DNA of 64,000 nucleotides from Macrostomum lignano (lineage: Eukaryota). Positions 8,111 to 49,214 of the stretch are shown one piece after another; positions within the stretch are counted from its first letter, which is position 1; each line of letters begins with the position of its first letter. The notes beneath the pieces were generated by a model. The model saw nothing but the letters and a program-made list of their open reading frames with translations, ran no database searches and was not told the origin of the DNA. A program made the position numbers and the translations under genes. The stretch lies in assembly GCA_002269645.1 (NCBI GenBank), contig NIVC01002452.1:1-64000 (forward strand), read 5' to 3'.

Positions 8111-11100
8111 ATGGGAAAGAAGAAAAAGGGAGGCGGCAAGAAGTCTAAGAAGTCTTCGCGCGCCCAATCTGGCGCCACTGGACAGGCTGGCGCGGGCGCC
8201 AAATTGGCGCCAGCATTGCCAGACAAGCGCGAACAGGAGGCCAAACTGCGCCAATTGAAGGATCTCCAACGTCGAGTAAGCGGACTTCAGAGACGCTGCG
8301 ACGAGTTGGAACTGTTGAACGACCAATTGAAGAGCAAGCGGGTGACGGTGTCGGGCGACATGGAGGAGATCACAGAGTACCTGCGCGACCGGGTGAGCGA
8401 GAAGACGAACACCTGCGCCGAGCTGCAGGAGGAGCTGCGCGCGCTTCAAGAGGCCTACGAGAAGGATCAGAAATCCTACGAGGAGAGAATGGAGAAGCAG
8501 AAGAAAGAATTTCGGGACACGAAGGAGCAGCTGGAGCAGGACGGGTTCACGCTGCGTGAGTTGAATTGAACGAAATTAAATTAACTTCAGTTACATGCGT
8601 TGTAGCGCTCTCCATCTTTTGGCGCCCTCTTGAATTAAATTCATTTCGCGCCCTCGTGAAATTCAATTTTAGCGCCCTCGTGAAATTCATTTCGGCGCCC
8701 TCTTGAAATTCATTTTGGCGCCGTCCCTACACTTATTCAATATTTCGTCGCCCTCTTGACATTCATTGTGACTTCCTTATAAGAATCATTTTGACGCCTT
8801 CTCGACACCCAATTTGGCGCCTTCCCGACACTCATTTTGGCGCCACATCCACTAAGTTTGGCTACCATTCACATGCAAGTTACAAAAGTATCTGTGAATT
8901 GTTAACAGCTTGCTGTACGCCGATCCCAACCGCAGAGAGCAAGCTGACCACCCTGGACGAGTACCGGATCCAGAAGGAGGAGATGCACGAGAAGTTCCAA
9001 GAAATGGACGAGAAAATGAAGCGCCAGGAGGAGATTCACAAGGAGGAGATCTACCTACTGGAGAGGGAGACAGTAGTGCAGAAAGACTCTCTGCGCAAGG
9101 AGATGGTCGAGAAAGTGAACGATGTGGCCAGCGAATTCCGCAAGGTGTCCAACAGGCAGATGGCAGAGACGACCCGGAAGACGATCGAAGAGAACGCGGC
9201 GCTCAACAGGCAGCTGGGCTCGCTCAGCGAGAAAATCACCGGCCTGATTGAGGAGAACGACAAAGTCAAGGCCAAGGAGAAGGAGCAGCAGCGGGAGATC
9301 GAGGTGCTGGAGTCCATCGAGAAGGAGATGCTGGCCAAGACTGCCAACTCGTTGAAGGTAAACTCGATCGCCTTCCAGAGTCACGGACGGACAAGAAATT
9401 AATTTGGGTTTTACAATTACTTGTGTGCTTTACTGATTCAATAAGAAGCCTATGCTCAAGTACTAGCGGAGGTTAACTAAGCTTTCCGCATAATATCTAT
9501 AAATTTGAAGGTCATTTGGCTCTCACTGGAAGTCAAATTTTCACTGACAGTCAATTGTCATTGACAGTCAAATTGGTCACTGACAGTCAAATTGGTCATT
9601 GACAGTCAAATTGGTCACTGTTAGTCAAATTGGTCACTGTTAGTCAAATTGGTCACTGTTAGTCAAATTGGTCACTGTTAGTCAAATTGGTCACTGACAG
9701 TCAAATTGGTCACTGTTAGTCAAATTGGTCACTGTTAGTCAAATTGGTCACTGATAGTCAAATTGGTCACTGATAGTCAAATTGGTCACTGACAGTCAGC
9801 TGTGTTTAAGATCAGTCTTTGAAAGGCAGAAAAGCATTACAACTCTGTCGAATACTTCAAAGTTATACAGTCGATTCGGTGTTTCCCATAATTATTAACA
9901 GCAGAGTTTGGGAGAACTTTTGCTTTAAAAATGCAACAGAAAGGATGCTAAAAAGGTGGCTAGCATTGTATAAACATAAAACTACAAGCCAGAATGGTTC
10001 AGAAGAAAATATTCGCACCAGATAAAACCTTTAGCTCGTAAACTAGTTAATTGGAATAGCTCGGCTTCAAAGCGGCCAGCAGGTCCCGATCAGCCGAGCC
10101 GAGCTCCTGCTGGCTAAAGTTGAACAGCTCCAGTTTGTCGCTAGGAAGCCGCTGTCTGAGCTCGTCAAAGAACGGGTGCGCCAGAGCTCGCAGCGGTGCC
10201 AACCGGCTGCCAGGCTGGTAGGCGAGCAGGCGGCACAGCAGGTCCAGCAACTCGGGCGGTGTACCAATCGGGAAGCTCAACTGCGGGTCAGGGGCCACCT
10301 GTGGCAGCGGGAACTTCTCATATACTGGATTCATAGCCAGCAGGTCGCGCTTGGTTGGCGTGCCCAGCACCCGGATGATGGCCACCAGCTGGTCCAGCGA
10401 GTTGTTAGCCATGAACAGGCAGTGGCCGATGCACAGCTCGGCAAGCACGCAGCCGACTGACCACAGGTCGATGGCGCAGCTGTAATTAGTAGAGCCGAAC
10501 AGCAGCTCGGGAGCTCGGTAGTACCTAGAGCTGATGTACGCCACTCCGGCTGCGGCGGCCGCGTTGGCGCCGCTGCCTTCGGCAAGTTCGCCGGGCAGCG
10601 GCAGCTCCTTGGCCGAGCCGAAGTCGCACAGGCGCAGGCGGCAGTCGGATTCGTCAACGAGAACGTTCGGGCTCTTGATGTCCCTTGGGAAGGAAAGTAA
10701 TCCGGTTCCAAGACACTATAATGCTGCAGTCACGTGTTAGGCCTTGTTTTTAAGGCCTAACGCCAGCCCCACATGTCCCCTTTTTTTTCTGGGCCAGCTT
10801 CCCAGATCCTCAGTTGCTGGGCCAGCCTCCCAGATTCCCAGTTGCTGGGCCTGCCTCACAGGTCCTCAGTTGCTGGGCCAGCATCCCAGATCTCCAGTTG
10901 CTGGGCCAGCCGGCCAGATCCCCAGTTGCTGGGCCAGCATCCCAGATCCCCAGTTGCTGGGCCAGCCTCCCAGATCCTCAGTTGCTGGGCCAGCCTCCAA
11001 GATCCCCATTTGCTGGGCCAGCATCCCAGATCCCCAGTTGCTGGGCCAGCCTCCCAGATCCTCAGTTGCTGGGCCAGCCTCCAAGATCCCCAGTTGCTGG

Positions 11101-14100
11101 GCCAGCCTCCAAGATCCCCAGTTGCTGGGCCGGCCGGCCAGATACCAGTTGCTGGGCCTGCCTCTCAGGTCCTTAGTTGCTGGGCCAGCCTCCCAGACTC
11201 CCAGTTTCTAAGTCTGACGCTGTTCCAGATGGTCATAGCTGCTCCGTCATCAGCCGCTCACCTGTGGCAGATGCGATGCGAATGCATATAATTGATAGCT
11301 CGCAGAAGCTGGTAGGCAAAGATTCGCACTTTGAGCATGGAAGGCAAAGTCTCAGCTTTCCTGTATCTTGCCAGCAAGTCTAACAGACTCTCCGGGAAGA
11401 GCTCAGTAACCAGGTGCAAATAGAGCTTCGGGCTCTTGATGTCCCTTGGGAAGGAAAGTAATCCGGTTCCAAGACACTATAATGCTGCAGTCACGTGTTA
11501 GGCCTTGTTTTTAAGGCCTAACGCCAGCCCCACATGTCCCCATTTTTTTCTGGGCCAGCTTCCCAGATCCTCAGTTGCTGGGCCAGCCTCCCAGATTCCC
11601 AGTTGCTGGGCCTGCCTCACAGGTCCTCAGTTGCTGGGCCAGCATCCCAGATCTCCAGTTGCTGGGCCAGCCGGCCAGATCCCCAGTTGCTGGGCCAGCA
11701 TCCCAGATCCGGCCAGATACCAGTTGCTGGGCCTGCCTCTCAGGTCCTTAGTTGCTGGGCCAGCCTCCCAGACTCCCAGTTTCTAAGTCTGACGCTGTTC
11801 CAGATGGTCATAGCTGCTCCGTCATCAGCCGCTCACCTGTGGCAGATGCGATGCGAATGCATATAATTGATAGCTCGCAGAAGCTGGTAGGCAAAGATTC
11901 GCACTTTGAGCATGGAAGGCAAAGTCTCAGCTTTCCTGTATCTTGCCAGCAAGTCTAACAGACTCTCCGGGAAGAGCTCAGTAACCAGGTGCAAATAGAG
12001 CTTGCCCGGGTCCATCTTGCCCCGGCAGTAGTAGTGGTAGCGCAGTCGCACCAGATTCTCGTGCTCACCAAGTGCGTACAGAGTGCGCAGTTCCCGATTT
12101 TTGTAGCGCGGATCCTGCAGCACCCGCTTGAGAGCCACCGACTCGCCTGACTCGGACAGGCGGCCTCGGTACACGGAGCCGAACGTGCCGGATGCGATTG
12201 GCCCCTTGATGAATGAAGTTTAGAGCGCCTGCGCTATATGGTGATGCAGTTACTCGTAATACCAGGCGCCAAACGATCGTATTCCATTTTATTTTATTTT
12301 ATCCAATTCAAATTGGCGCCAAACACTGGGACTGCTAAATTGTCGTTTATAGTATTCCGAAAACAAAACACAATTAAAAAACTTTAAAAACAAACACAAT
12401 TAATAAAATATTTAGCTGTGTTAACTGCTTAACGATTGTTTATTTAACAATACCGTTTTGGCGCCAAATTTGAACTAGATTGAATTTTAACGAACGCCAA
12501 AACGAGAAAAATTCCATTTTTTAGAAAGTACAGAAGAAAATTGAGTCTCTAGTTAACAGGGGTCAGCAAACTCCGGCCCGCTCAGTGCTTATATCTCTTC
12601 TCAGCGCTCTTCTATCTAATCTCCTCTCTCCTCTCCTCTCCTCTACTCTACTTTACTCTCTCCCTTCTCCTCTGCTCTCCTCTCCTCTCCTCTCCTCTCC
12701 TCTCCTCTCCTCTCCTCTCCTCTCCTCTCCTCTCCTCTCCTCTCCTCTCCTCTCATCTCATCTTAACTTCTTTCATCTCCTCTCATATCCTCTCATCTTC
12801 TATCATCCCATCTCCTCTCCTCTCCTCTCCTCTCCTTTCCTCTACTTTACTCTCTCCCTTCTCCTTTCCTCTCCTCTCCTCTCTCCTCTTCTCTCCTCTC
12901 CCAATTCATCTCTTCTTGTTCTTTCCTCTCGTCTTCTCTTTTCTCGTTTATTCCCTCGCTTCAAGCCTCTTTCTCCCTATCTCCCTCTTCTTCTTTATTC
13001 CCTCCTTCTCTTCCCTCCTCCGGCCCGCAGTTTTGACCTAGGTTCTCTATTTGGCCCTTGTGGTAAAAACGTTGGCCGACCTCCGCTCTAGTATTTCATG
13101 TCGTTATTCAGGCAGTTTTACGCATTGTAAATGCACAACTCGACTCAATGCGAAATCGTACACTACTCGTACATGCAAGTCGCTTACCGTAGACACAGTC
13201 AGTTCAATTTGTCTATAAGACTGTCTCTGGATCGGATCAAAAGCCGGACAAGCCATGACGGAAACTTGCAACTGTTTTTTTTGTCGGCTGTGCGACGAGC
13301 GCGTCTTCTCGCCGTCGAATTGGTCGTCATAGCTGATTAAGGACATTTCTTGCTTCTTGTTTGCGAGTCCCAAGTCTTGGTTCAACAAAAAAGTGCCTAT
13401 TTAACTTCGATTTGGTTCAGCAGGCATTCTATTGAAGCCAATTGTTGGGTCCTGGCGTAGAATTTTATAACTTTGGGGTGCTTGGGTTTGGGGGGTTTGT
13501 TTTGGGTTTTATGACCCCCCTTCCTCAAACACCCATTTATAGTGAATGTACAATGCAATGTACATTTAGAAATAGCTTCTTAGTACATCTCGTCTAACAA
13601 GTTTTTCTGTACAGTTTTCACGTTGATTGAATGTAAATTTCTTTGTAATTAATTATCTGCAATACCTCACCAGAGCAGAGCTTGCTGCCTAGTCAGTTTT
13701 ACATCAATTTTGAAAACCCCCTCTGAGTCTGTCATTGGAATACAGACTGCTACAAACTATACATGTACAATAGTTTAACTGAAGTGAACTGAAGTTTTTT
13801 TTAAGTGCCACTTGGTCTGGTTTTTCACTGGACAGACAATACGAGCGTTGTTTTGCGATGTAAAAGTGAAAGTCAAATGGTTATTTTGGTTGATGCTGCT
13901 CGGCAGGGAAGAGCAAAAGGTCGCGGCTCCCGACCGGTACTGGCCCCGGGTCGCCCACCATCACTAAACCTGAAAAATCACAACTCCGAAAAGCATTGTT
14001 CATCATAGGCTCGATATATCATAGCACCGAAAGTGCTAGCGGGTTTGTCGTTTGTGATATTTCGGGTTTTTGATATTTCGGGTTTTTGATATTTCGGGTT

Positions 14101-17624: not shown

Positions 17625-18885
17625 ACTAGCTATCTGAGAGGACATGACCTCAGACAAATTTATGCAACAGGCTATCTGAGGACATGACCTGAGAGACAAA
17701 TTTATGCTACAGGCTATCTGAGGACATGACCTGAGAGACAAATTTATGCTACAGGCTATCTGAGGACATGACCTGAGAGACAAATTTATGCTACAGGCTA
17801 TCTGAGGACATGACCTGAGAGACAAATTTATGCTACAGGCTATCTGAGGACATGACCTGAGAGACAAATTTATGCTACAGGCTATCTGAGGACATGACCT
17901 GAGAGACAAATTTATGCTACAGGCTATCTGAGGACATGACCTGAGAGACAAATTTATGCTACAGGCTATCTGAGGACATGACCTGAGAGACAAATTTATG
18001 CTACAGGCTATCTGAGGACATGACCTGAGAGACAAATTTATGCTACAGGCTATCTGAGGACATGACCTGAGAGACAAATTTATGCTACAGGCTATCTGAG
18101 GACAAGCTACGAATTTGTCACCTACTTTCACAAGCGCTAAACTTTACTAACGCTAAACTTCACAACCGCTAAAACACAAATGTCGCCTACTTTCACAAGC
18201 GCTAAACTTTACTAACGCTAAACTTCACAACCGCTAAAACACAAATGTCGCCTACTTTCACAAGCGCTAAACTTCACAAGCGCAAAACTTCACAAACGCT
18301 AAGCACGAATGTCGTCTATTTTCACAAGCGCTAAAATAGTATATTAGTATATTAGTATAGTATATTAGTATAGTATATTAGTATATATAGTAAATTAACA
18401 TTTTAGCGCTTGTAAAAGAAGCCGACATTCGCGTTTTGGGGATTGTAAAGGTTAGCGTTTGTGAAGTTTAGCGCTTGTGAAAGTAGGCGACATTTGTGTT
18501 TTAGCGGTTGTGAGGTTTAGCGTTTGTGAAGTTTAGCGCTTGTGAAAGTAGGCGACATTTGTGTTTTAGCGGTTGTGAGGTTTAGCGTTTGTGAAGTTTA
18601 GCGCTTGTGAAAGTAGGTGACAAATTCGTAGCTAATTTGAAATATGCTAATTTGTATGAAGTTTTGCGCTTGTGAAGTTTAGCGCTTGTGAAAGTAGGTG
18701 ATTTCGCTATTCTGAAGTTTAGCGTTTGTGAAGTTTAGCGCTTGCGAAAGTAGGTGAGTTAGCGCTTATGAAAATTAGCGCTTGTGAAGCCTCCCCGACA
18801 AATTTATGCAACAGGCTATCTGCATGAGGACATGACCTCAGACAAATTTATGCAACAGGCTATCTGAGGACATGACCTCAGACAA
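17625..18885. repeat. 42-bp minisatellite (gctatctgaggacatgacctgagagacaaatttatgctacag) interrupted at 18105-18795
   Basis: About 11 units before and 2 units after the inserted foldback element. Confidence 0.9.
18105..18795. mobile_element. Foldback/palindromic MITE, left end truncated
   Basis: agctacgaatttgtcacctactttcacaagcgctaaac (18105) inverted at about 18595-18633; modular gtttagcgcttgtgaa repeats; AT-rich centre. Confidence 0.75.
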
Positions 18886-23786: not shown

Positions 23787-25565
23787 ATGCCTCTGATGTA
23801 TGACCGACCGAAAATGTCTCAGGCGATGTACCAATCGCTGAAGCGGCACATCGTCCGCCAGCGCAAGAGGGATGCCGACATGAAAATGCTTGACGCCACC
23901 AATCAGCGGCTGCGAGCAGAGCGGGAGGAACTCCGCAGGCAGACGCTGCAGTCGTTGAGAAAGACCAAAGATGAGGTTGGAAGCCTGCAAGCTTTTAATT
24001 TGTCATTCTAAGAGAATTTGGGAAGGTGAGCAACTGAATATCTGGGAGGCTGGCCCAGAAACTGAGGACTGGAAGGTGACCCAAAAAATGAGGATCTGGG
24101 AGGCTCTCCCAACAACAACTGGGGATCTTCCGGATCTAGGAGGCTGGCCTAGCAACTGAGTATCTGGGAGGCTGGCCCAACAACTGAGGATCTGAGAGGC
24201 TGGCCCAGCAACTGAGTATCTGGGAGGCTGGCCCAACAACTGAGTATCTGAGAGGCTGGCCCAGCAACTGAGGATCTGGAAGGCTGGCCCAGCAACTGAG
24301 GATCTGGGAGGGTGGCTTAGCAACTGAGGATCTGGGAGGCTGGCCCAGCAACTGACACTCTGGGAGGCTGGCCCAGCAATTGGGGATCTGGGAGGCTGGC
24401 CCAGCAACTGACACTCTATAGGCTGGCCCAGCAACTGACACTCTATAGGCTGGCCCAGCAACTGACAGTCTGGGAGGCTGACTCAGCAACTGACAGTCTG
24501 GGAGGCTGGCCCAGCAACTGACACTCTGGGAGGGTGGCCCAGCAACTGAGTATCTGGGAGGCTGGCCCAGCAACTGAGTATCTGGGAGGCTGGCCCAACA
24601 ACTGAGTATCTGAGAGGCTGGCCCAGCAACTGAGGATCTGGGAGGGTGGCTTAGCAACTGAGGATCTGGGAGGCTGGCCCAGCAACTGACACTCTGGGAG
24701 GCTGGCCCAGCAATTGGGGATCTGGGAGGCTGGCCCAGCAACTGACACTCTATAGGCTGGCCCAGCAACTGACAGTCTGGGAGGCTGACTCAGCAACTGA
24801 CAGTCTGGGAGGCTGGCCCAGCAACTGACACTCTGGGAGGGTGGCCCAGCAACTGAGTATCTGGGAGGCTGGCCCAGCAACTGAGTATCTGGGAGGCTGG
24901 CCCAGCAACTGAGTATCGGGGAGGCTAGCCCAGCAACTGAGTATCTGGGAGGCTGGCCCAGCAACGGAGGATTTGGGAGGGTGGCGGTAGCGTAGCCTGA
25001 GCATTCACCTCTGGCCCAACACCACCTGTCCTGTACCCGCTGAAAGGTGAAGCGACTCCAAGGCCGCCTCGAAAAACTGCGCGAAGAGAAGAGCAAGCTG
25101 TTCAGCCGCTTCAAGGAGGTCTTTACCGAGGAGTCAGTCCAGAAGGAGCGCCAGAAGGAGGTGCAGAGCCACTTGCCACACCTGCAGCAGCAATTCCAGC
25201 AGCAGCAGCAGCAGACAAGCCTTTACCTGCAAGATATGCGGCATAGCCAGCCTCCGCCAGCTTCATCTTCGACCAGGTTGGGTAAGCGGGCAGCCCGCAG
25301 TCCGAGCCCCGTGTCAGGCGTTCGTCAGGCGAAAGCCGCCGCGAATACAGCCGTGTTCTCTCAGCAGCATTCTTCGGCATTAAAATCGGCCACTACCGGA
25401 CATATGCAGCATCCGCTGTCGGCCTCCTATAGGGGCTCCATCACTACTGGACAGTCGGCTCAGCAGATGCAGTTTCAGATGCAGCAGCAGCCGCAGCAGC
25501 GCCATTTCGGAGCACCGGTTTACCCCCCAGGCTACGGCGGTGACGGTTTCAAGCATCCCTTTTGA
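23787..25565 (+). CDS. GPS2: G protein pathway suppressor 2; exons 23787-23975, 25047-25565 (235 aa)
   Basis: MPLMYDRPKMSQAMYQSLKRHI...TKDE|VKRLQGRLEKLREEKSKLF matches the GPS2 N-terminal coiled coil; phase-0 GT-AG intron; Q/S/P-rich tail. Confidence 0.8.
24031..24990. repeat. 28-bp minisatellite family array in GPS2 intron
   Basis: (aactgag[g/t]atctgggaggctggcccagc)n with duplicated multi-unit blocks. Confidence 0.9.
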
Positions 25566-27215: not shown

Positions 27216-27912
27216 GCCCAGACACTGGGGATCTGGGAGCCTGGCCCAGCTACTGGGGATCTGGGAGCCTGGCCCAGCTACTGGGGATCTGGGAGGCTGG
27301 CCCAGCTACTGGGGATCTGGGAGCCTGGCCCAGCTACTGGGGATCTGGGAGGCTGGCCCAGCTACTGGGGATCTGGGAGGCTGGCCCAGCTACTGGGGAT
27401 CTGGGAGGCTTGCCCAGACACTGGGGATCTGGGAGCCTGGCTCAGCAACTGAGGATCTGGGAGGCTGGCCCAGCAACTAAGGATATGGGAGGCTGGCCCA
27501 GCAACTGACACTCTGGGAGGCTGGCCCAGCTACTGGGGATCTGGGAGGCTGGCCCAGCTACTGGGGATCTGGGAGGCTGGCCCAGACACTGGGGATCTGG
27601 GAGCCTGGCTCAGCAACTGAGGATCTGGGAGGCTGGCCCAGCAACTAAGGATCTGGGAGGCTGGCCCAGCAACTGACACTCTGGGAGGCTGGCCCAGCTA
27701 CTGGGGATCTGGGAGGCTGGCCCAGCTACTGGGGATCTGGGAGGCTGGCCCAGACACTGGGGATCTGGGAGCCTGGCTCAGCAACTGAGGATCTGGGAGG
27801 CTGGCCCAGCAACTAAGGATCTGGGAGGCTGGCCCAGCAACTGACACTCTGGGAGGCTGGCCCAGCAACTAAGGATCTGGGAGGCTGGCTTCCAAGATCC
27901 GGGAGGGTGGCG
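27216..27912. repeat. 28-bp minisatellite family array, no host gene identified
   Basis: Same unit with about 6-unit higher-order repeats; ends gggagggtggcgg like the GPS2 array. Confidence 0.9.
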
Positions 27913-28419
27913 GCCATATATAGTTCACAAACATACAAGCCTCTTTGCACATCAAAATATACGTAATTTGGTCCTTAATTTTGCAAATTAGATCACCAAC
28001 AAAGGAAGCAGTCTTGGAGAAATTTGTACTTTTAAGTACTATCTATGATGACGGGTTTAGGGGCGTAAATAGGAATTATAATTCCGAATGTACTTATATT
28101 TCACCGCGGCAAAAGTAGCGATGCATTACATACCATTTTTTGAGAAACTTTGAATTTTGATGACTAAGTTTATTTGGTAATAAGATAAATTCAGCTGTTA
28201 ATTGCACCATGATATTAAAGTAGAAATGCAATTTTACTAAGCTAATAAAATGCTGTCCAAAGTATGCAAGATGAAAACAGTTAAGTATGTAGCCTAACAT
28301 ACATTTAGATCTTTGTTAAGGATTAAGGAAATCAAATTGGAGGGTCTGAAGAAACAGTTAAAAGAACTGGATTATGGAATGGATATTTTTCTTTCACATT
28401 GTTTACAATGTGATGAGGG

Positions 28420-29340: not shown

Positions 29341-29649
29341 AAGCTGTTGAAACCCGCGGATTTTGAACCCGGGGAATTCCAATCCCCGGAACTACTTTTG
29401 CATGTATTCTGAAATCTAAGGCCATACCCCATACACAAACAAATTAATAGTTAGTAGGATAGAGGTAGACATAAAATGGAGCACATTTGTGTAAAATTAG
29501 GTTTTGAGGCAAACGTTGATATTGTTTGCTGGAATGCTAGGGTACTCCACAGAATGCCAGGCAATGTCTGTCTGACTCTAAAACATGTATTGGCAAAATC
29601 TGGCCTCTCCCTGACTCTCCCTATGTCTCTTGGATCCTTTAAAATTTCT

Positions 29650-30195: not shown

Positions 30196-30258
<63 letters not shown>

Positions 30259-32905: not shown

Positions 32906-32936
32906 AGACCTTCCCCAAATCAAACCTCCCCAAAGC

Positions 32937-34916
32937 CTAAAAGTCAGCCTTAGTATAAGCAACTAAACAGAACTCGCACAGGTCGGCAAGCCTGTTGGCG
33001 GCCTCCTCGCTCAGCAGGCAGCGAAATCGCGGATTGGCCAGCCGGTCTCGGGTCGGCGCCGCGGCAGTCAGGAAGCCCAGGCGGACCAGATCGACCAGGC
33101 AGGGCAGGGCGGCGGTGGCGTCGAAGACCTGCGACTCTCGCGAGATCACCCGACAGATGTTCAGCAGGCGTTCCAGCGGCACCGGTCGGACGGCCAGGGC
33201 CTCCATAGCGGCGGCGGCGGCTACTGCAGCCGGCTTTTTCTGCTTCTTCCGAGGCTTCTGCCTTCGACCGGAGTTGAAGGCGAACATTCGGCGATCGTGA
33301 GAGGGCGGCACGCGGGTGCACAGGAAGGCGGCCAGAAGGAGGAAGCGGCTGAGCAGCGGCAGGTCGGCAAACTGCTGCTGCTGCTGCTTCACGCCCCCGA
33401 CGCCAGTCAGCGCAGCCGATGCGACTGGAGACGTCAGCGGAGTCAGCAGGCCGCGCAGATGGGAGCACAGGATCGCTTTGATCTTGCCGCCACCGCTACT
33501 AGCGGAGCAGGCGGACCGGCAGGAGGCGACGGCCTCAGCGATGAGTGCGGGCTGCCGCGTCATCGGGAAAGCGATGTCGACGGCCATCTGGACGATGGGG
33601 TCGCGGTCGCCGCCAGGTAGGCCAGCTGACACAATGTCCACCAGCTGCGGCTTGGTGTAGGCCGGCAGGTGGAGGCTGCGGGGGCAGATGCGGTTTGGGA
33701 TTTGGGATAGCTGGCTCACCGACTGACGATCTGAGATGCTGGCCCAGCAACTGAGGATCTGGGAGGCTGGCCCAGCAACTGAAGATCTGGGAAACTCGCC
33801 CCCAGCAACTGAGGATCTGGGAAACTCGCCCCTAGCAGCAACTGAGGATCAGGGAAACTCGCCCCCAGCAACTGAGGATCAGGGAAACTCGCCCCCAGCA
33901 ACTGAGGATCTGGGAAACTCGCCCCCAGCAACTGAGGATCTGGGAAACTCGCCCCTAGCAGCAACTGAGGATCTGGGAAACTCGCCCCCAGCAACTGAGG
34001 ATCTGGGAAACTCGCCCCCAGCAACTGAGGATCTGGGAAACTCGCCCCTAGCAGCAACTGAGTATCTGGGAAACTCGCCCCTAGCAGCAACTGAGTATCT
34101 GGGAAACTCGCCCCTAGCAGCAACTGAGGATCTGGGAAACTCGCCCCTAGCAGCAACTGAGGATCTGGGAAACTCGCCCCTAGCAGCAACTGAGTATCTG
34201 GGAAACTCGCCCCTAGCAGCAACTGAGTATCTGGGAAACTCGCCCCTAGCAGCAACTGAGTATCTGGGAAACTCGCCCCTAGCAGCAACTGAGTATCTGG
34301 GAAACTCGCCTCTAGCAGCAACTGAGGATCTGGGAAACTCGCCCCCAGCAACTGAGGATCTGGGAAACTCGCCCCCAGCAACTGAGGATCTGGGAAACTC
34401 GCCCCCAGCAACTAAACACAAGCAAACAAACCAATAGGCAGAGGCGGCGGCCGCGGCGGCGCAGCCCCTGGCGTAGCTGGTCCAGGGCAGGCGGCCAACC
34501 AGCAGCAGGCGAGCGCCAGTCAGCTGCCGGATTCTCATCAGGGCGGCCAGTATTTTGCCATCGGCGGACTCGGCCAGACGCTCGGCGTCGTCCAGAGCGA
34601 GCCAGTCTCCGGGCCGGAGGCAGCAGCCGAGAGCGCTGGCCCAGTCGTCTGCGGGATCAGGCCTCCTGGAGCAGCCATCCCCGCTGGAAGCCAGGTGAAT
34701 GATGAAGTCTACCAGCTTCCTGACGCTGCCAGCCGACTCGGTGCAGGTGAGCCGCAGGTGAGGCAGGCCGGATAGCGCAGCCTCGGCCAGAAGGGTCTTG
34801 CCGCAGCCCGGCGGGCCCCACAGGTGTACAAAGGACACCGTGGACTCGGGAGGCTGTTCCAGCAATTGGCGAAGCTGAGCGAACTCCACTTCGCGACCAA
34901 CAATGCGAGTTTTTGC
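32937..34916 (-). CDS. ORC5: Origin recognition complex subunit 5; exons 34916-34432, 33675-32937; no genomic ATG
   Basis: IVGRE, Walker A GPPGCGKT, LALDDAERL, LHLPAYT, LPLLSRFLLLAAFLCTRVPPSHDRRMF, PVPLERLL, LVDLVRLGFL, PRFRC; phase-2 GT-AG intron; 1224 nt in frame. Confidence 0.85.
33725..34413. repeat. 28-bp family array diverged to 30/33-bp units in ORC5 intron
   Basis: First units canonical (ctgggaggctggcccagc), remainder ctgggaaactcgccc[c/ctag]cagc. Confidence 0.9.
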
Positions 34917-37900
34917 CTGCAATATGTGCGCGATTGGGAGGATATTATGCAGTTCTTATTGATTCTTTCGGAATACTGTATATCTGCTTATTTATTTTTC
35001 TAGATCTAATTATAAGACCTCTGTTATACAACATTTTCCTAAGGGACTCAAGCCAAGTTAATTGCCCATTTGAGTCTTGCCAAGGTCAATTATAAAGCAG
35101 CAGAGTCAGTTGAGACTCCAAATTTCTCATTTGCATTAAGAAACCCACGCATTGGATATAGAATAAAGAAATCTAAAGCTTAAGGCTAAAGGTAGGCCTA
35201 ACAAAAATGAGAATTTACTAGGATTAAAAATGAAATTTGATAATTTTATTCCAGCTTTATACTTTTAGCATTGCTATTTAAGTATGATCCATAAATATAT
35301 ATATTACTCTAGAATTTACATATAGACAATAAAATAAAGATAAGATCTACTGAATATACTAAATATAGGACACTCACTTTGTACACTTTTATGCACAATG
35401 CAAAAAGCTAAAGTATTATAGAACTAAAATAAAATCGTCCTTATACCACTTATGCACTGCTAAATACTTATTAGGCCTAGGCCTAGCCTATTCTAGATTT
35501 TGATAATATTTATGATTGGTATTTTAGATGAACTAGATAGATAATTTGCTGATTAGTACAATTGTTCAATATGTTTATAGGTCTATATTTTTGTAGTTAT
35601 AAAGAGTGAGATGATAGTTTGAGTATTTTTGCCAACTTTTAACGTTTATAATTAACACATATTTTATCATGTCATGTCAATCACTCTTTTTGATCTAGTT
35701 TTTAGCTAATTCTAATGTTCTAATTATAGACAAATACTATAATTTTATACAATAAAAACTCAGTATTATTGGTTGAAATCAAAGTTTCTTTCTTATAAGG
35801 TTTTCAGTGGCAATTATCTAGGACAAAATATTTTGAATCTCTTTGACACTAGCTCTAGATTTTGGCATAAACTTGTCATAGGCCCTAACTTCTTCATAGC
35901 CTTTTGCATTAGGTCTAGATATAGTAATGTTAATCTTTTGCCTTATTGTAGCGCATGGCTTAGGTGCCCCAGACACCCACCCTTACTGTGCCGCAATGGC
36001 ACCTAAATAAAGATGTTAGACAGAGGGGAAGCACTTAACTTTGCCATATTGCACCCAGTGGGAGATTTAGGGGGAAAGCACACAAGGCAGATTTTTTTAT
36101 ATAGAAAAAAACACATTATAATGTATATGTACATTTTTGTCTATATCCCACTTCACTATACTACACTACACCTGCTGCCTTTTATTGCTTTGCCACATTG
36201 CGCCATGCCAGGATATACTTTATAAATCAAGTGCGCATAACAAAAAATATTTCACCAAGAAAGGCACACATAACAGTGGATTTTTTTGCCAGAAAAGTAT
36301 GTATATCATTGGATTTAAATGTAAACAAGGGTAACACTAGCACCAATATTAATTTACTGAAGCTCCCTTATTGCAAAGAAAAATTTTAATGAAGTTTTGC
36401 ATATATGTACATTTATTTTTTTTACTTTATACAAAATGCATTATTTGTTTTACCTAAATGAATTTTACCTTGGGTGCCATGCCACGCCGCACTATGCCAG
36501 GCTGATCTATGCAAGATACTGTTTACTAAAATGCCTATGCACTGTAATTGGGATCATTTGCATTTGTCTACCCAATTAGGCCTAGGTCCTAGCTTATCTA
36601 AATTGTACTTGTGTTGTGTATTTGATGCTACAATATGAAATTATTGGGATAAGGCTAAAGAGGTTGGTTGCATTGGCATAGAGCCCAGTATTCAGGAAGT
36701 CAATTTTATTTATTGTTTTTTAAAGGCAATTGTTATTGTTACAATGATGATACAAATAAAAAGCAATGGTTATTTTTACAGTTAACATATAAAATGGTGC
36801 ATGACTAAGATGTAAGACTACTTATATACTAAGACTGCCACAGCTAGGCCTATTACTAGCTATTGGTATTGAAGGCTAGGTTTTTTAAGGTTAGAAATCC
36901 AGTTGCTAGCTGGCTTTTAGGACTCAAAATCTAGTTGCCAATAGCTATTTTTGGTTGCCCATTGGCAACTAGCCAAATTCTTGAAGATAGATATTTCTAA
37001 GGCTATGTTTAAAAGGCAGAAATTTGTTCTCTTAACTCTAAAATTGCTATCAATATGGCAAACAATAACAAACCAACAATTCCATCATATTGATTCATAT
37101 GCCTATGGCACTTTTTATTAAATTTACAAAATCATTTTTTGAAATTGGCAACTGGCTTGTGGAAAATGAAGTTGCCAGATTGGCCTCTAACGCCAAAAAT
37201 CCAGTTGCAAATGAGATTTTCAAAGGGCCAAAAAACCTTGTATAGCCTAAAAAACCCAGATTGAGAGGGAGCTACCAATCTTCTAGCATTGCTATTCCTC
37301 TCACAGGTTCCTTTCTTGCAACCCAACCTTATCCTGCTGGCTCCCCTATCTACTCGTCTCCTTTTAGCACTAGGGGGCCTATCCAATAACATTACATATT
37401 AAGCCAAATTTCTCCTCTAGCTCCCTCAAGTGTGGTCTTGGTCCTATACCCATAAAAAACATAAATTAAATGACAATTAACAAACTTTCACTGCAAAAAA
37501 TAAAAGGTTCTTAAGTTTAAAAAATAAAGAAACATATTATTTATATACTAGGCCTAGATAGTAACTTATAATAGTTCTTGTTACCAACAGCTAGCTTTAA
37601 GCTTACTTATATAATTATTAACTATTAATGTAAATGAACTTTCTTCTCTATGATTGTAAAAATAGCCATTTTGCTTCTTACATATGATGACCATAAAAAT
37701 AGCAGTTTTGCTATTTAAATTATATCTATATGGTTAGCCCCCTCCCTACATTAAGTTAAAACCTTAAGCCTAGACAGTGTCTTATGTGTTGACTGTAAAA
37801 AATGGTTTCGCTATTTATATGGTCACCATAGCATAACAATAACAACTGCCTTTTTTAAAACATTCTGCAGTTCAAGTTAAACAAATTTGCATAAGCCTGT

Positions 37901-39749: not shown

Positions 39750-40117
39750 ATGCCGTCTCCAGCTGCGCCACTGCTAATGCGCCTGCTAGCCTGCTCAGCA
39801 TCTGCCGCGGTGCGCGCTGGCGCCTATGTCCACGAGGTGATGCGCAGTGGCGAGCTCGGCATCGTCATCAAGGGCCACAATGATCTGCAGACGCAGGCAG
39901 ATCGAGGCGCCCAGCGGCTCATCACGGCCAACCTGCGGGCCGCCTTCCCTGGCCTGACTGTCATCGGCGAGGAGGAGGAGGACCCTGCAGCGGCGCCGCT
40001 TGGCCCTGATGAGATCGTTGAACCTCTGGACGAAGTGCTGCAGCAGTGTCACAGGTGTGCCAGGGCTGAGACTCGTGGCATTTCTGGACTTAGGGGAACT
40101 AACTAACTAACTAACTG

Positions 40118-40165
<48 letters not shown>

Positions 40166-40166
40166 C

Positions 40167-40208
<42 letters not shown>

Positions 40209-40209
40209 G

Positions 40210-40292
<83 letters not shown>

Positions 40293-40304
40293 GACTAACT
40301 AACC

Positions 40305-40379
<75 letters not shown>

Positions 40380-40380
40380 C

Positions 40381-40423
<43 letters not shown>

Positions 40424-40432
40424 CAACTAACC

Positions 40433-40463
<31 letters not shown>

Positions 40464-40513
40464 CAACTAACTAACTAACTAACTGACTAACTAACTAACT
40501 AACTAACTAACTG

Positions 40514-40564
<51 letters not shown>

Positions 40565-40763
40565 GACTAACTAACTAACTAACTAACTAACTGACTGACT
40601 AACTAACTGACTAACTAACTAACTGACTAACTAACTGACTAACTAACTAACTAACTAACTAACTGACTAATAACTAACTAACTAACTGACTAACTAACTG
40701 ACTAACTAACTAACTGACTAACTAACTAACTAACTGACTAATAACTAACTAACTAACTAACTG

Positions 40764-40814
<51 letters not shown>

Positions 40815-40840
40815 GACTAACTAACTAACTAACTGACTAA

Positions 40841-40889
<49 letters not shown>

Positions 40890-41994
40890 GATTAACTAAC
40901 TGATTATCTAACTAACTGAATGACTAACTAAATAACCAACTAAAAGAAATACATAAAAACCAACCCACCCTCTGTGTACTGCAGATGCCCCGAAAAAGTA
41001 CAAAACGTTCGACCCGAAGATCTAACAGTCTGGGTCGATCCACTCGATGGCACATCGGAATTTGCCGACAATCTACTCGACAATGTCACCGTGCTGATTG
41101 GAGTGGCACTGGAAGGTCAAGCTGTTGCCGGGGTGGTGTACCAGCCTTATTATCGCTACCTAACCGACCCCAGTCAGGCTGGCCGGCTGGTCTGGGGCCT
41201 GGACGGTCTGGGCATCTTCGGCATGGGCTCGGACTCGCACCGCCCTCTGCCCACTGGTCGCGTAGTTGTCACCACGCGCAGTCACGACAGCGATACTGTC
41301 ACGGCCGCCGTGACTGCCTGCGGTCCTACTCAGGTAGTAGTGCAGTCAGTGTCTCCTCAGCACTGTGTGTTAGGCTCTCCTTTGCCCTCTGTGTGTGTCA
41401 CCCTTTGCCCTCTGTGTGTGTTACCCTTTGCCCTCTGTGTGTGTTACCCTTTGCCCTCTGTGTGTGTTACCCTTTACCCTCTGTGTGTCACCCTTTGCCC
41501 TCTGTGTGTGTTACCCTTTGCCCTCTGTGTGTGTTACCCTTTGCCCTCTGTGTGTGTTACCCTTTGCCCTCTGTGTGTGTTACCCTTTGCCCTCTGTGTG
41601 TGTTACCCTTTGCCCTGTGTGGGCTATCCTCCGCTGTCTCCAGTATTACCCTCTGCCTACCTATCCCTCCGTCGCCATCTATAAAACCCAGACCCTCCGA
41701 GTCGGAGGCTGCGGCCACAAGGTGCTGCTGCTGCTGGAGCGGCGGGCTCACCTGTACATCTTCGCCTCGGCCGGCTGCAAGAAGTGGGACACCTGCGCTC
41801 CGGAGGCGTTGCTGCGCGCAGCCGGCGGTCGCTTGACCGACATCTTCGGTCGGCAGCTGCGCTACGATCCCGGAGTTGAACGGCCGAACAACCGCGGCGT
41901 CCTGGCGGCGATGCGGGTGGAAGATCATCAGCGCTGCGTCGAGGCCATGCCCGAAGATGTTCGACAGAAGCTTCAGGGCCCGAAGCAGAGCTGA
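39750..41994 (+). CDS. BPNT1: 3'(2'),5'-bisphosphate nucleotidase 1; exons 39750-40054, 40985-41333, 41692-41994 (318 aa)
   Basis: LLMRLL, DLQTQADR, VIGEEE, VWVDPLDGTSEF, VTVLIGVA, RVGGCGHKV, GCKKWDTCAPEALLRAAGG; phases 2 and 0 consistent. Confidence 0.9.
40099..40945. repeat. (CTAA)n microsatellite in BPNT1 intron 1
   Basis: About 200 units with CTGA/CCAA variants. Confidence 0.95.
41375..41655. repeat. About 23-bp minisatellite (ccctttgccctctgtgtgtgtta) in BPNT1 intron 2
   Basis: About 10 units. Confidence 0.9.
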
Positions 41995-42133
41995 TGGCCT
42001 GGCTGCATAGTGCAGTGTTTGCGCTGTCTATGGAGCACTCACAGCTTCCAGACATGTGCCACCAGAGTTTTCATTCTTCTTCATAGTGGGCCTACAGATT
42101 AGCTGTTAATGAGTTATTAGTTAGTGGGCTAGC

Positions 42134-42134
<1 letters not shown>

Positions 42135-42173
<39 letters not shown>

Positions 42174-42204
42174 CAGTTAGTTAGTCAGTTAGTTAGTTAG
42201 TTAA

Positions 42205-42243
<39 letters not shown>

Positions 42244-42244
42244 A

Positions 42245-42319
<75 letters not shown>

Positions 42320-42370
42320 CTTAGTTAGTTAGTTAGTTACTTAGTTATAGTTAGTTAGTTAGTTAGTTAA

Positions 42371-42419
<49 letters not shown>

Positions 42420-42420
42420 C

Positions 42421-42455
<35 letters not shown>

Positions 42456-42534
42456 CAGTTAGTTAGTTAATTAATTAGTTAGTTAGTTAGTTAGTTAGTT
42501 AGTCAGTTAGTTAGTCAGTTAGTTAGTTAGTTAA

Positions 42535-42575
<41 letters not shown>

Positions 42576-42592
42576 CAGTTAGTTAATTAGTC

Positions 42593-42631
<39 letters not shown>

Positions 42632-42644
42632 CAGTTAGTTAGTC

Positions 42645-42683
<39 letters not shown>

Positions 42684-42684
42684 C

Positions 42685-42715
<31 letters not shown>

Positions 42716-42716
42716 C

Positions 42717-42767
<51 letters not shown>

Positions 42768-42768
42768 C

Positions 42769-42815
<47 letters not shown>

Positions 42816-42850
42816 CAGTTAGTTAGTCAGTTAGTTAGTTAGTTAGTTAA

Positions 42851-42891
<41 letters not shown>

Positions 42892-42892
42892 C

Positions 42893-42923
<31 letters not shown>

Positions 42924-42958
42924 CAGTTAGTTAGTTAGTCAGTTAGTTAGTTAGTTAG
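42135..42958. repeat. (TTAG)n microsatellite downstream of BPNT1
   Basis: Reverse complement of the intron-1 array, similar length. Confidence 0.95.
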
Positions 42959-44782: not shown

Positions 44783-47700
44783 ATGAGATTGGCGCTTCTA
44801 GCTTTGAGTCTGGCTGCTTTAGTGCAGTGTGCCTTCTCTGGTGAGTTTTTAACACAGACATAAGTACAGTCTGACCCACGCTGAAACTATAGCTGACCCA
44901 TATTGGAAAAGCCTGGATTTAAACTTCTTGAGTTTGTTAGAACAGTCCAATCCTTATGATAGCAGTCTGACAACCACTAGAGCAGTCTGACAACCACTAG
45001 AGCAATCTGACAAACCACTAGAGCAGTCTGACAACCACTAGAGCAGTCTGACAACCACTAGAGCAGTCTGACACACACTAGAGCAGTCTGACAACCACTA
45101 GAGCAGTCTGACACACACTAGAGCAGTCTGACACACACTAGAGTAGTCTGACACACAGTAGAGCAGTCTGACACACACTAGAGCAGTCTGACACACACTA
45201 GAGCAGTCTGACACACACTAGAGCAGTCTGACACACACTAGAGCAGTCTGACACACACTAGAGCAGTCTGACACACACTAGAGCAGTCTGACACACACTA
45301 GAGCAGTCTGACACACACTAGAGCAGTCTGACAACCACTAGAGCAGTCTGACAACCACTAGAGCAGTCTGACACACACTAGAGCAGTCTGACACACACTA
45401 GAGCAGTCTGACACACACTAGAGCAGTCTTACACACACTAGAGCAGTCTGACACACACTAGAGCAGTCTGACACACACTAGAGCAGTCTGACACACACTA
45501 GAGCAGTCTGACACACACTAGAGCAGTCTGACACACACTAGAGCAGTCTGACACACACTAGAGCAGTCTGACACACACTAGAGCAGTCTGACACACACTA
45601 GAGCAGTCTGACACACACTAGAGCAGTCTGACAACCACTAGAGCAGTCTGACAACCACTAGAGCAGTCTGACACACACTAGAGCAGTCTGACACACACTA
45701 GAGCAGTCTGACACACACTAGAGCAGTCTGACACACACTAGAGCAGTCTGACACACACTAGAGCAGTCTGACACACACTAGAGCAGTCTGACAAACACTC
45801 ACTAGAGCAGTCTGACAAACACTCACTAGAGCAGTCTGACAACCACTAGAGCAGTCTGACAACCACTAGAGCAGTCTGACACACACTAGAGCAGTCTGAC
45901 AAACACTCACTAGAGCAGTCTGACACACACTAGAGCAGTCTGACACACACTAGAGCAGTCTGACATTCAATAGAGCAGTCTGACAACCACTAGAGCAGTT
46001 TGACACACACTAGAGCAGTCTGACACACACTAGAGCAGTTTGACACACACTAGAGCAGTCTGACACACACTAGAGCAGTCTGACACACACTAGAGCAGTC
46101 TGACACACACTAGAGCAGTTTGACACACACTAGAGCAGTCTGACACACACTAGAGCAGTCTGACACACACTAGAGCAGTTTGACACACACTAGAGCAGTC
46201 TGACACACACTAGAGCAGTCTGACAACCACTAGAGCAGTCTGACACACACTAGAGCAGTCTGACAACCACTAGAGCAGTTTGACACACACTAGAGCAGTC
46301 TGACACACACTAGAGCAGTCTGACACACACTAGAGCAGTCTGACACACACTAGAGCAGTTTGACACACACTAGAGCAGTCTGACACACACTAGAGCAGTC
46401 TGACAACCACTAGAGCAGTCTGACACACACTAGAGCAGTCTGACAACCACTAGAGCAGTTTGACACACACGGTCTGACCCTCGGTCTCCGCTCAAAAAAT
46501 TTCAGTTCGACTCCCACCCTCGCTAACAAGGACGCCGCCAAAGGAGGCGGCCTTCAAGCCTGGTGAGCCCTTCAGGCTTGAGTGCGAGGCCTCGGGCAGT
46601 CCGGCCCCGACATTCACATGGAAGCGAAACGGTCAGGTGCTGGATTTGACAGCCGACTCAGATCGGTACGAGCGGCCTTCTGGCTCGGGAACGCTAGTGC
46701 TCGTTTCTCCCGGTGTCCGTGACGACGGATCTTACCAGTGTCTGGCCCAGAATAAGCTGGGCGTGGCCGCTTCGAACCTAACGGTAAGTTTGGAAAATTG
46801 GAAATTTCATTAATAGGTCGACAGGTAAACCGTAAGCGATCCCATCAGATCCTCAGGTTATTCCTTTCAGGATTTCGTACCATATATTCTCATTATTCCC
46901 ATTTTTATTCTCTAACTAATTCCCAATCAATGCCTGCAGTTCCTTCGCCCTGCCATGCTGGGCCAGTTTCTTCAAGAGCCGAGTGCCACGGTGCGGCGGC
47001 GGCTTGGAAGTCGGCTGGCATTGCCCTGCGTGCCGCCCATAAATTTCCCCGACGCCCCGGTAGTCTGGCACCGGATTGCAGATGCGGACGGCGCCCAGCC
47101 GATGGTGATTCAATGGTCCAATCGAATCAACATCGACCCCGTGAATGGCAACCTGCTGTTTTCTAACATTCAGCTGTCCGACAAGGCAACCTACCGATGC
47201 AGCGTGGAGAACAGGATTCTTAGACGGGCTGTTCAAGGTGGAAGCTACCGGCTGGATGTGATCAAAGGCGCCATCACATCGGCTGCTGCTCAGCTCATGG
47301 CGCAGAAACCCTCTTTTATAACTGCTCTCGCGAACAGAACTCTCGATTTGTTTTGCTTCTTCTCCGGCTTCCCGACGCCCAGCATCCAGTGGAAGAAGGA
47401 TTCGACTGAGGTCTCTTCGGGGGAGCGGCTGCAACTGCTGGACTCTGGCGCCCGCCTGCGGCTCATCGATATTGACCCGGATTATCACGCTGGTGAGCTC
47501 GCCGAGGCCAGCTCTGCTGCCCCATCCTCGGGCTGGAGCGCTCCCAGATCCTCGGTTGCTGGGCCAGCCTCCCAGATCCTCGTTTGCTGGGCCAGCCTCC
47601 CAGATCCTCGTTTGCTGGGCCAGCCTCCCAGATTCCCAGTTACCAGACCAGCCTCCCAGATTCCCAGTTACTAGGCCGGCCCTCCAGATCCCCAGTTACT

Positions 47701-49214
47701 AGGCCAGCCTCCCAGATTCCCAGTTACCAGACCAGCCTCCCAGATTCCCAGTTACTAGGCCGGCCTCCCAGATCCCCAGTTACTAGGCCAGCCTCCCAGA
47801 TTCCCAGTTACTAGGCCAGCCTCCCAGATTCCCAGTTACTAGGCCGGCCTCCCAGATCCCCAGTTACTAGGCGAGCCTCCCAGATTCCCAGTTACTAGGC
47901 CAGCCTCCCAGATCCCCAGTTACTAGGCCAGCCTCCCAGATTCCCAGTTACTAGGCCAGCCTCCCAGATCCCCAGTTACTAGGCCAGCCTCCCAGATCCC
48001 CAGTTACTAGGCCAGCCTCCCAGATCCCCAGTTACTAGGCCAGCCTCCCAGATCCCCAGTTACTAGGCCAGCCTCCCAGATCCCCAGTTACTAGGCCAGC
48101 CTCCCAGATTCCCAGTTACTAGGCCAGCCTCCCAGATCCCCAGTTACTAGGCCAGCCTCCCAGATCCCCAGTTACTAGGCCAGCCTCCCAGATCCCCAGT
48201 TACTAGGCCAGCCTCCCAGATCCCCAGTTACTAGGCCAGCCTCCCAGATCCCCAGTTACTAGGCCAGCCTCCCAGATTCCCAGTTACTAGGCCAGCCTCC
48301 CAGATCCCCAGTTACTAGGCCAGCCTCCCAGATTCCCAGTTACTAGGCCGGCCTCCCAGATCCCCAGTTACTAGGCCGGCCTCCCAGATCCCCAGTTACT
48401 AGGCCAGCCTCCCAGATCCCCAGTTACTAGGCCGGCCTCCCAGATTCCCAGTTACTACTGCAGCAAGACACTGCACTCGATTTTCTTAGAAAACATCCGG
48501 AGGCCGGCAAGGAACGCCTATTTGTCCCATCACCAGTGCATTTAGTATTCCTCTAGAAAACGCATAGCGCTGAATGAAGTTTTGCCATAGACAAATTCAA
48601 TCGAGAAAAATTCTATTTCCTGAAGGCATATGTTCCTCATTAGGTCGGCCTCCGCCAGATTCTCGCAGTTGCTCCCAGGTCCATCGCCCAGTCAAGTGCC
48701 CTTACCCAGAATCGCTACAACTAACTCCATAAAATTGAGTCGCCATAAAATCTCCAACCCTTTTGTCACGGCAACCGCAGGTGTTTACCAGTGCACCGGC
48801 GCCAATGAGGGAGGCTTCGACGACGCCGGCACCTACCGCGTACGAGTGGCCAGCGAGCCCTACTGGATTCAGAAGCCAGCTGACGTCTCCGTGCCCGAAG
48901 GCGGCAGCCACACGTTCCACTGCGAGGCTGGCGCCGCGGCCGGCGACCCGAAGTGGCTCATCAACGGTGTACCGGTCAGCGGGTCCGACAGCCGCTTCTC
49001 CCCGGTCGGCAGTGAGTTTCAGTTTAGCAATCTCACGGTGAGAGACTCGCTCGTGGTGCAGTGCAATGTCAGCAATAGGTATGGATACGTATTCACCAAT
49101 GCCTACCTGAGTGTGCTGCCGCCGTCAGCCACTTCGGACACAAAAGTGCCATGGTTCACTATTAAGTACTACTGGCTACTGTTGAATTACTTTGCCACAG
49201 TGTTTATTCCTTAA
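44783..49214 (+). CDS. L1/neuroglian-family protein with four Ig domains only; exons 44783-44840, 46506-46783, 46940-47492, 48781-49214 (440 aa)
   Basis: Signal peptide MRLALLALSLAALVQCAFS; Ig1 LECEASGSPAPTFTWKRNG...DGSYQC; Ig2 GNLLFSNIQLSD..YRC; Ig3 FCFFSGFPTPSIQWKK...GVYQC; Ig4 PYWIQKP...QCNVSNRYGYVFTNAYLSVL; hydrophobic C-terminus; phases 1/0/1. Confidence 0.85.
44960..46470. repeat. 20-bp minisatellite (ctagagcagtctgacacaca) in Ig-gene intron 1
   Basis: About 75 units. Confidence 0.95.
47540..48457. repeat. 28-bp family array in Ig-gene intron 3
   Basis: Units drift from gctgggccagc to actaggccagcctcccagat[c/t]cccagtt. Confidence 0.9.

Follow-up and report, generated by a model that had tools for sequence, protein, structure and literature searches.

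What kind of element can come to occupy introns of several unrelated genes within a few tens of kilobases? This question is raised by a 64,000-nt stretch of the genome of the flatworm Macrostomum lignano (bases 1-64000 of NIVC01002452.1, assembly Mlig_3_7; hereafter the window), in which a 28-bp unit, AACTGRGGATCTGGGAGGCTGGCCCAGC, forms tandem arrays in predicted introns of a GSK3-like kinase gene, GPS2, ORC5 and an immunoglobulin (Ig) domain gene, as well as one array to which no host gene could be assigned. An earlier note on this DNA had described the unit as a hairpin-forming minisatellite that might be mobile or introner-like and that targets or survives in introns. Our analysis points to a known class instead: the 28-mer is probably a dispersed euchromatic minisatellite (short-unit satellite) family that has long resided at its sites, is hypervariable, and is tolerated in introns.

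Allowing up to three mismatches, the unit matched the window 93 times, compared with no match in 100 dinucleotide-preserving shuffles, and all matches fell within six arrays (Table 1). A scan with a 20-nt core yielded 103 matches in the window, every one inside the same six arrays, and detected no solo units elsewhere. The arrays are head-to-tail, with a 28-bp period, 8-33 copies and a length of 232-954 bp. Tandem Repeats Finder (TRF) reported five of them with a 28-bp period and the ORC5 array with a 33-bp period; degenerate units of A2 begin before its TRF start. Relative to transcription, the arrays of the kinase gene and GPS2 are sense and those of ORC5 and the Ig gene antisense; within the window, arrays were never found in coding sequence. 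These three scans bear out the array positions, the occurrence in both orientations and the absence from exons given in the earlier note.

Table 1. Arrays of the 28-bp unit, their host introns and other tandem arrays compared between subgenome copies. Positions refer to the window; a slash marks a splice junction.
Feature	Position	Strand	TRF call	Description	Array length in window (bp)	Array length in other copies (bp)
A1	10789..11206	-	10789-11206 (15 copies, 28-bp period)	15 28-mers; sense to GSK3-like kinase; in predicted intron 10684-11261
A1'	11550..11781	-	11550-11781 (8 copies, 28-bp period)	shortened duplicate of A1, 8 units; in duplicated intron 11445-11836
A2	24032..24987	+	24134-24985 (30.5 copies, 28-bp period)	~34 units; sense to GPS2; in predicted intron 23976-25046
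A2 ends	24032..24987	+		first unit begins AACTGAAT; tail GGGAGGGTGGCGG
A3 (orphan)	27216..27913	+	27216-27889 (24 copies, 28-bp period)	24 units; 168-bp higher-order period; no host gene assigned; 1.65 kb downstream of GPS2 stop	674	325 (L005:1074-1398) and 169 (L004:787-955)
A4	33725..34410	+	33745-34410 (21 copies, 33-bp period)	2 canonical 28-mers, then 30/33-mer derivatives; antisense to ORC5	686	380 and 106
A5	47541..48457	-	47541-48457 (32.8 copies, 28-bp period)	33 units (CCTAGT variant); antisense to Ig-domain gene	917	586 and 585
Kinase intron (predicted)	10684-11261			junction HR/DIKSPN, exact reconstitution; 72% array
GPS2 intron (predicted)	23976-25046			junction TKDE/VKRL; 89% array
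ORC5 intron (predicted)	33723-34427			97% array; acceptor AG inside last degenerate unit
Ig gene intron (predicted)	47493-48780			phase 1, DYHAG/VYQC; 71% array
Kinase tandem duplication	10666-11428 and 11427-12003 (span 10666..12003)	-		761 bp; sequence self-match
(AACT)n					847	747 and 110
(ATC)n					825	833 and 237
12-mer					520	520 and 1504

Identity of units within arrays (0.87-0.93) exceeded that between arrays (0.71-0.86), and the consensus of each array carried array-specific changes, which confirms the local homogenisation noticed earlier. Higher-order block repeats were likewise evident, in the form of the second TRF period of A3 (95%). The window contains just two copies of the tail GGGAGGGTGGCGG, which close A2 (24975-24987) and A3 (27901-27913) on their 3' side, in agreement with the earlier observation of one tail on two arrays. 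These two neighbours, which are 2.2 kb apart and in the same orientation, have in common not only this 13-nt tail but also the first unit AACTGAAT and the variants GACACT and GAGTAT. Such sharing of derived variants and of both end units supports copying or conversion of arrays between sites. A GGGAAT variant is common to the kinase and Ig arrays, and the ends of A1, A4 and A5 are unlike those of A2 and A3.

The history of the arrays was assessed by comparison of subgenome copies. M. lignano has three subgenomes (S, L1 and L2), whose divergence is ~2% for single-nucleotide polymorphisms and 32-36% when long insertions are counted (PMC10733133). Homeologs of window positions 26-64 kb were available in NIVC01001104.1 (L001 and L005), NIVC01004471.1 (L002) and NIVC01004173.1 (L004), so that the comparison covers A3, A4 and A5, while A1 and A2 (window 0-26 kb) lie outside it. 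All tandem arrays that could be anchored by their 120-bp flanks occupied the same site in every copy. These flanks were 97-100% identical for all arrays but (AGTT)n in L005 (90/94%), and the 300-bp flanks of A3 were 96-100% identical between copies. No filled-versus-empty site was seen, A3, A4 and A5 being present in all three copies. In addition, the homeologs carry the same array signatures, namely the CCTAGT variant of A5 (T25/T28) and the tail of A3. Given the same sites in all three subgenomes with near-identical flanks, the insertions appear to be old and to predate the divergence of the subgenomes. The suggestion of a mobile element thus found no sign of recent mobility at these three loci.

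What does differ between the copies is array length, by 1.6-6.5 fold for the 28-mer arrays and by up to ~8-fold among all anchored arrays. In its shortest version the ORC5 array consists of four units and ~20 bp of other DNA; the intermediate version has four canonical 28-mers followed by eight 30-mers and one 33-mer, and the window copy is mostly 30/33-mers. Array ends stay stable and the interior changes. Since the subgenome split, these arrays have thus gained and lost units in place while being homogenised locally, as is typical of classical minisatellites. Changes in array length of this kind are as expected from the published pattern of long-insertion divergence, and length differences of arrays probably account for much of the 32-36%. 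The comparison shows concretely what such divergence consists of at this locus.

The 28-mer has the properties of a minisatellite: a tandem 28-bp unit, copy-number variation between near-identical loci and interspersed variants. It is also dispersed, with one monomer at five loci in 38 kb and in at least two gene predictions elsewhere, each between unique flanks. Its arrays are non-coding and mostly lie inside short introns at fixed single-copy sites. The two gene predictions were detected by a HMMER scan with a translated array, in which two M. lignano UniProt entries were found to run into arrays of the same family. In A0A1I8J1R5, an ARL3-like protein, the C-terminus goes from an exon directly into units of a different variant; A0A1I8JRP3, predicted at 947 aa, contains a degenerate array. 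The family therefore reaches beyond this region. A scan of metagenome contigs with a 22-mer of the unit gave no matches, and searches of the Macrostomum literature with satellite or minisatellite terms found no description of the family. That several UniProt models, including these two, read into arrays indicates that tandem repeats appear to disturb gene annotation. Exact look-up of a 301-aa methyltransferase-like open reading frame and of the ARL3-like P0250 found no record.

Pfam confirmed that the hosts are four unrelated genes, as the earlier note had named them: matches were to protein kinase, G_path_suppress (GPS2), ORC5_C and AAA_16 (ORC5), and Ig domains, and the kinase is ~48% identical to GSK3s. 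Their introns were predicted from canonical GT..AG boundaries and restored reading frames. The kinase (10047-12230), GPS2 (23800-25565) and ORC5 (32937-34922) genes, with clear frames and Pfam matches, are unannotated in the NCBI record. A protein search with ORC5 gave no match, probably because of an excess of low-complexity words, and a combined kinase, GPS2 and ORC5 query retrieved distant GSK3s only. The arrays noted at 10789 and 11550 in the kinase gene both exist, but they are not independent. Each copy of the 761-bp duplication contains an exon segment (KLYLHL..ICHR), the array-bearing intron and the five codons of DIKSP, and the order of unit variants is identical in A1 and A1'; one array was thus duplicated, leaving five independent loci, not six. 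The 183-nt exon copy in the middle (11262-11444) keeps the reading frame and encodes 61 residues, from the DIKSP junction via KLYLHL to ICHR. The kinase mRNA would either carry these 61 extra residues or skip the exon copy, and the duplication itself could be real or an assembly artefact. In addition, the array-bearing intron had been taken as the only firmly supported one of the kinase gene; as the first visible exon has no start codon, there is at least one more intron upstream.

Neither do the arrays amount to whole introns. In three of the four host introns, the array is separated from the splice sites by 47-324 bp of unique sequence. Of the splice sites, the ORC5 acceptor alone falls within a unit, the junctions show just a generic AG/G, and the unit contains no GT on the sense strand.

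Tandem repeats of other families provide the context for this intronic residence. They are a prominent part of the M. lignano genome, where simple and tandem repeats account for 15% and the mean intron is 1.1-1.4 kb long (PMC5730564). In the window, 28.9% of the sequence is tandem repeat, with 26 arrays of at least 200 bp belonging to ~15 families. Annotated proteins matching the window were BPNT1 (P0241) and an M13 peptidase (P0243; exon 98% identical to a BOX15_Mlig protein). The locus of P0241, NIVC01002452.1:29765-51994, is identical to the corresponding positions of the window. In BPNT1, (AACT)n makes up 91% of one transcript-supported intron and a 23-mer array 67% of another, and an annotated Ig gene at 60-64 kb encloses four further arrays. 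Altogether, tandem arrays constitute 67-97% of six out of the seven introns that could be defined; the peptidase intron alone has none. Since unrelated families also fill introns, two of them transcript-supported, intron residence is a general property of tandem repeats in this genome and not of the 28-mer, and the idea that the unit specifically targets introns is not upheld. Lacking any machinery for autonomous transposition, the 28-mer belongs to a large set of tandem families that together account for the bulk of intron length, and it is distinctive only in the recurrence of one unit at several sites.

Several features of these other families were observed. The (AACT)n array at 40097-40943 (BPNT1 intron 1) and an (AGTT)n array at 42112-42958, just past the BPNT1 stop, form an inverted pair of 847 bp each that brackets BPNT1 exons 2-3. 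They are 94% complementary over ~575 nt, with homeolog lengths of 747/791 and 110/370 bp, and from their sequence could pair into a very long duplex in pre-mRNA. A 34-mer family (GATTAGGGGATCTGGATTCC...) adjoins the orphan array A3. Its array is split, in the window copy only, by a ~3-kb insert (29340-32323) that includes a 1.3-kb TC-rich low-complexity block and has no clear terminal inverted repeats; the two parts lie at 28412-29339 and 32324-32907, and both homeologs have one unbroken array (L004:1471-2198 and L005:1945-3486). The 10-mer GGGGATCTGG is common to the 34-mer and the 28-mer, an overlap seen in 1/2000 shuffles. Because 10-mers are shared in 3 of 120 pairs of tandem families in the window, this overlap is at most suggestive, a hint that tandem families may derive from one another.

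The hairpin for which the unit had been singled out does exist but is not distinguishing. Its CTGGG-N7-CCCAG stem has a predicted energy of -3.7 kcal/mol as DNA, which is at chance level relative to shuffled sequences (z = -0.26), and trimers likewise folded no better than shuffles (z from -1.4 to +0.5). With a 5-bp stem no better than that of shuffled sequence, the hairpin was rejected as a functional feature. Searches of the window gave no Rfam match at gathering score and no tRNA, so that, with folding at chance level, a structured RNA or a repeat derived from 7SL or a short interspersed element is not indicated. The resemblance of CCCAGCTACT..GGGAGGCTG to the 7SL 5' domain, which would have suggested an Alu-like origin, was dropped as chance; no Rfam match was obtained and the CTACT variant occurs in one array only.

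Two alternatives concern the way in which one unit came to be present at five sites. The arrays might be the internal repeat region of a non-autonomous transposon, such as a Helitron/Helentron, a miniature inverted-repeat transposable element (MITE) or a foldback element, with short or decayed termini. The identical first unit and tail of A2 and A3 would fit the copying of a defined element, A1 terminates in an A8 run with a 10-bp-stem hairpin behind it, foldback-like structures of other repeats exist in the window, and satellite-like arrays on Helentrons are known in oyster (PMC7492417). However, BLAST of the 400-bp flanks of the five loci against each other revealed no common sequence, and the intron flanks were single-copy in ~150 kb of genome except for homeologs and the local duplication. 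No inverted terminal repeats were found, and no target duplications beyond the generic AG/G of splice junctions, consistent with the earlier statement that the unit lacks terminal inverted repeats, target site duplications and coding capacity. Nor were any termini common to the family, end units being shared by A2 and A3 alone and differing in A1, A4 and A5. We therefore consider a transposon of this kind improbable. We assign an even smaller chance to a purely local origin, by which all five arrays would stem from one ancestor through segmental duplication or rearrangement within 40 kb and the family would be neither dispersed nor mobile. The clustering in 38 kb, with no array in the other 26 kb of the window or in ~5 kb of L001 beyond it, fits such an origin, as do the copying of one array by the 761-bp duplication and the common variants of the neighbours A2 and A3. 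Yet no flanks were co-duplicated besides those of the 761-bp duplication, the orientations of the arrays differ, and predictions elsewhere (A0A1I8J1R5 and A0A1I8JRP3) carry arrays of the 28-mer whose unit variants differ.

Two further alternatives concern the introns. In an introner-like scenario, array DNA inserted into coding sequence would have made new spliceosomal introns, and the family would have driven the gain of introns within the Macrostomum lineage. The best support, from a single gene, is the kinase intron, which splits the HRD motif at HR/D (AG/G, phase 2). In the orthologs of Schistosoma haematobium and Fasciola gigantica, residues 1 to ~288, HRD included, are encoded by one exon, and in opossum GSK3A, too, HRD is exonic and no intron occurs there. 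By parsimony, this intron would have arisen in the Macrostomum lineage. Thus, the comparison of intron positions with orthologs that had been proposed favours gain for this one gene, although the array may have expanded inside a young, ordinary intron. Also consistent with intron gain are the ORC5 intron, with its acceptor in the last unit and a 106-bp homeolog of little more than units, and the ARL3-like prediction that passes from exon straight to array. Against it stand the lack of conserved termini and of a target duplication beyond AG/G, the presence of both orientations, the unique sequence at array edges in three of the four introns, the array outside any recognised intron, and the filling of other introns by unrelated families. 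Moreover, the arrays are not discrete elements of near-constant length equal to the intron but make up 71-97% of it and vary in length as described above, and insertion polymorphism is absent for A3, A4 and A5, all filled in the three subgenome copies. No flatworm introner was found in a literature search judged on titles and abstracts. We accordingly regard an introner-like element, which the earlier note had considered, as unlikely. It is similarly improbable that short-unit tandem arrays in general, of which the 28-mer is the clearest case with several loci, are a main source of intron birth and growth in M. lignano and not just passive filler, being inserted into exons and spliced out via cryptic sites; the kinase HR/D intron and the nearly all-repeat ORC5 intron would be examples of such satellite introners, which would be distinct from transposon-type introners.

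Two related observations were made on these introns. The positions of introns in the GSK3-type kinase gene are wholly different between the worms: both trematode orthologs share an intron at ISSR/YYRAPE, absent in M. lignano, and have one further 3', while M. lignano has HR/D and another one farther 5'. Such divergence suggests that flatworm introns in this gene turn over at a high rate. In ORC5, the idea that an inserted element had left behind a lineage-specific stretch of coding sequence holding the intron was rejected, because the start of exon 2 (SVSQLSQI) aligns with human SIGNLQKI without an insertion.

If the 28-mer is a long-resident dispersed minisatellite, its behaviour could be explained by the following steps. 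Before the subgenomes diverged, array DNA would have been copied to new sites without flanking sequence, likely by re-insertion of array fragments (as circular DNA or as filler in break repair) or by ectopic conversion. Because the five loci lie within 38 kb and A2 and A3 have common ends and derived variants, the spread may have been mostly short-range. Replication slippage and unequal or intra-array recombination would then change array length, and introns may retain the arrays because splicing removes them, whereas a 28-bp unit inside an exon would disrupt the frame. Several points weigh against this explanation. The mechanism of dispersal is suggested by analogy, with no empty site found; the intronic location of four of the five loci seems to exceed what passive survival would give if the introns were ~20-370 bp long before the arrays; and both the lineage-specific kinase intron and the ORC5 intron, which is nearly all repeat units even at 106 bp, fit intron creation.

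In one further part of the window, repeats of other families form a foldback-like structure (17629-18885). It consists of inverted arrays of a 65-bp unit (18105-18302 versus 18436-18633, 93% complementary), flanked by inverted arrays of a 42/44-bp unit (17629-18104 versus 18797-18885).

That tandem arrays account for the greater part of intron length at this locus has consequences for gene prediction and assembly, for the design of transgenes and for estimates of how far the subgenomes have diverged. If the intron-gain reading were true, the locus would provide a tractable animal case of intron gain without a transposon mechanism.

Comparison with known systems places the 28-mer closest to dispersed satellites and minisatellites. 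Vertebrate variable number tandem repeats (VNTRs) have GC-rich units of 10-100 bp in arrays of 0.1-1 kb, with interspersed variants, stable ends and a variable interior. The 28-mer resembles them in its large copy-number differences between near-identical copies, and they offer a model for its dynamics in place. However, VNTR loci usually share a short core, whereas the five loci described here share the complete 28-bp unit, and the variation seen here is between subgenomes and not between alleles. Introners, which are present in Micromonas, fungi, dinoflagellates and some aquatic animals, are discrete elements of near-constant length that constitute the whole intron and carry or create splice sites. 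The 28-mer is like them in that one family occupies introns of unrelated genes, at least one of which (kinase HR/D) is lineage-specific; it differs in its length-variable arrays, both orientations, unique intronic flanks and lack of insertion polymorphism.

Euchromatic arrays of the Drosophila 1.688 satellite are similar to the dispersed satellites of Tribolium. In Tribolium and oyster, dispersed satellite families occur in gene-rich DNA, and spread by extrachromosomal circular DNA (eccDNA) or transposons has been proposed (PMC11610590, PMC3411249, PMC5844308, PMC7492417). In Crassostrea gigas, short arrays of one Helentron/MITE-associated family are dispersed in gene-rich DNA (PMC7492417), as are those of the 28-mer; the oyster arrays lie between conserved transposon termini, and no conserved flanks were found for the 28-mer arrays. 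The satellites of Tribolium castaneum (TCAST-like, Cast1-9) differ in the size of the unit, 170-360 bp compared with the 28 bp (minisatellite size) found here; in addition, no heterochromatic master array is known for the 28-mer, and its arrays fill the greater part of the introns that host them. In other respects the likeness is close: numerous short arrays of one monomer are scattered through gene-rich DNA, frequently within or close to genes and in introns (PMC3411249, PMC5844308, PMC11610590), located between unrelated unique flanks, with local elongation and homogenisation. Re-insertion of eccDNA or spread by transposons has been proposed for these families, and their junctions are sometimes at poly(A)/(T) tracts, comparable to the T8 run that A1 abuts.

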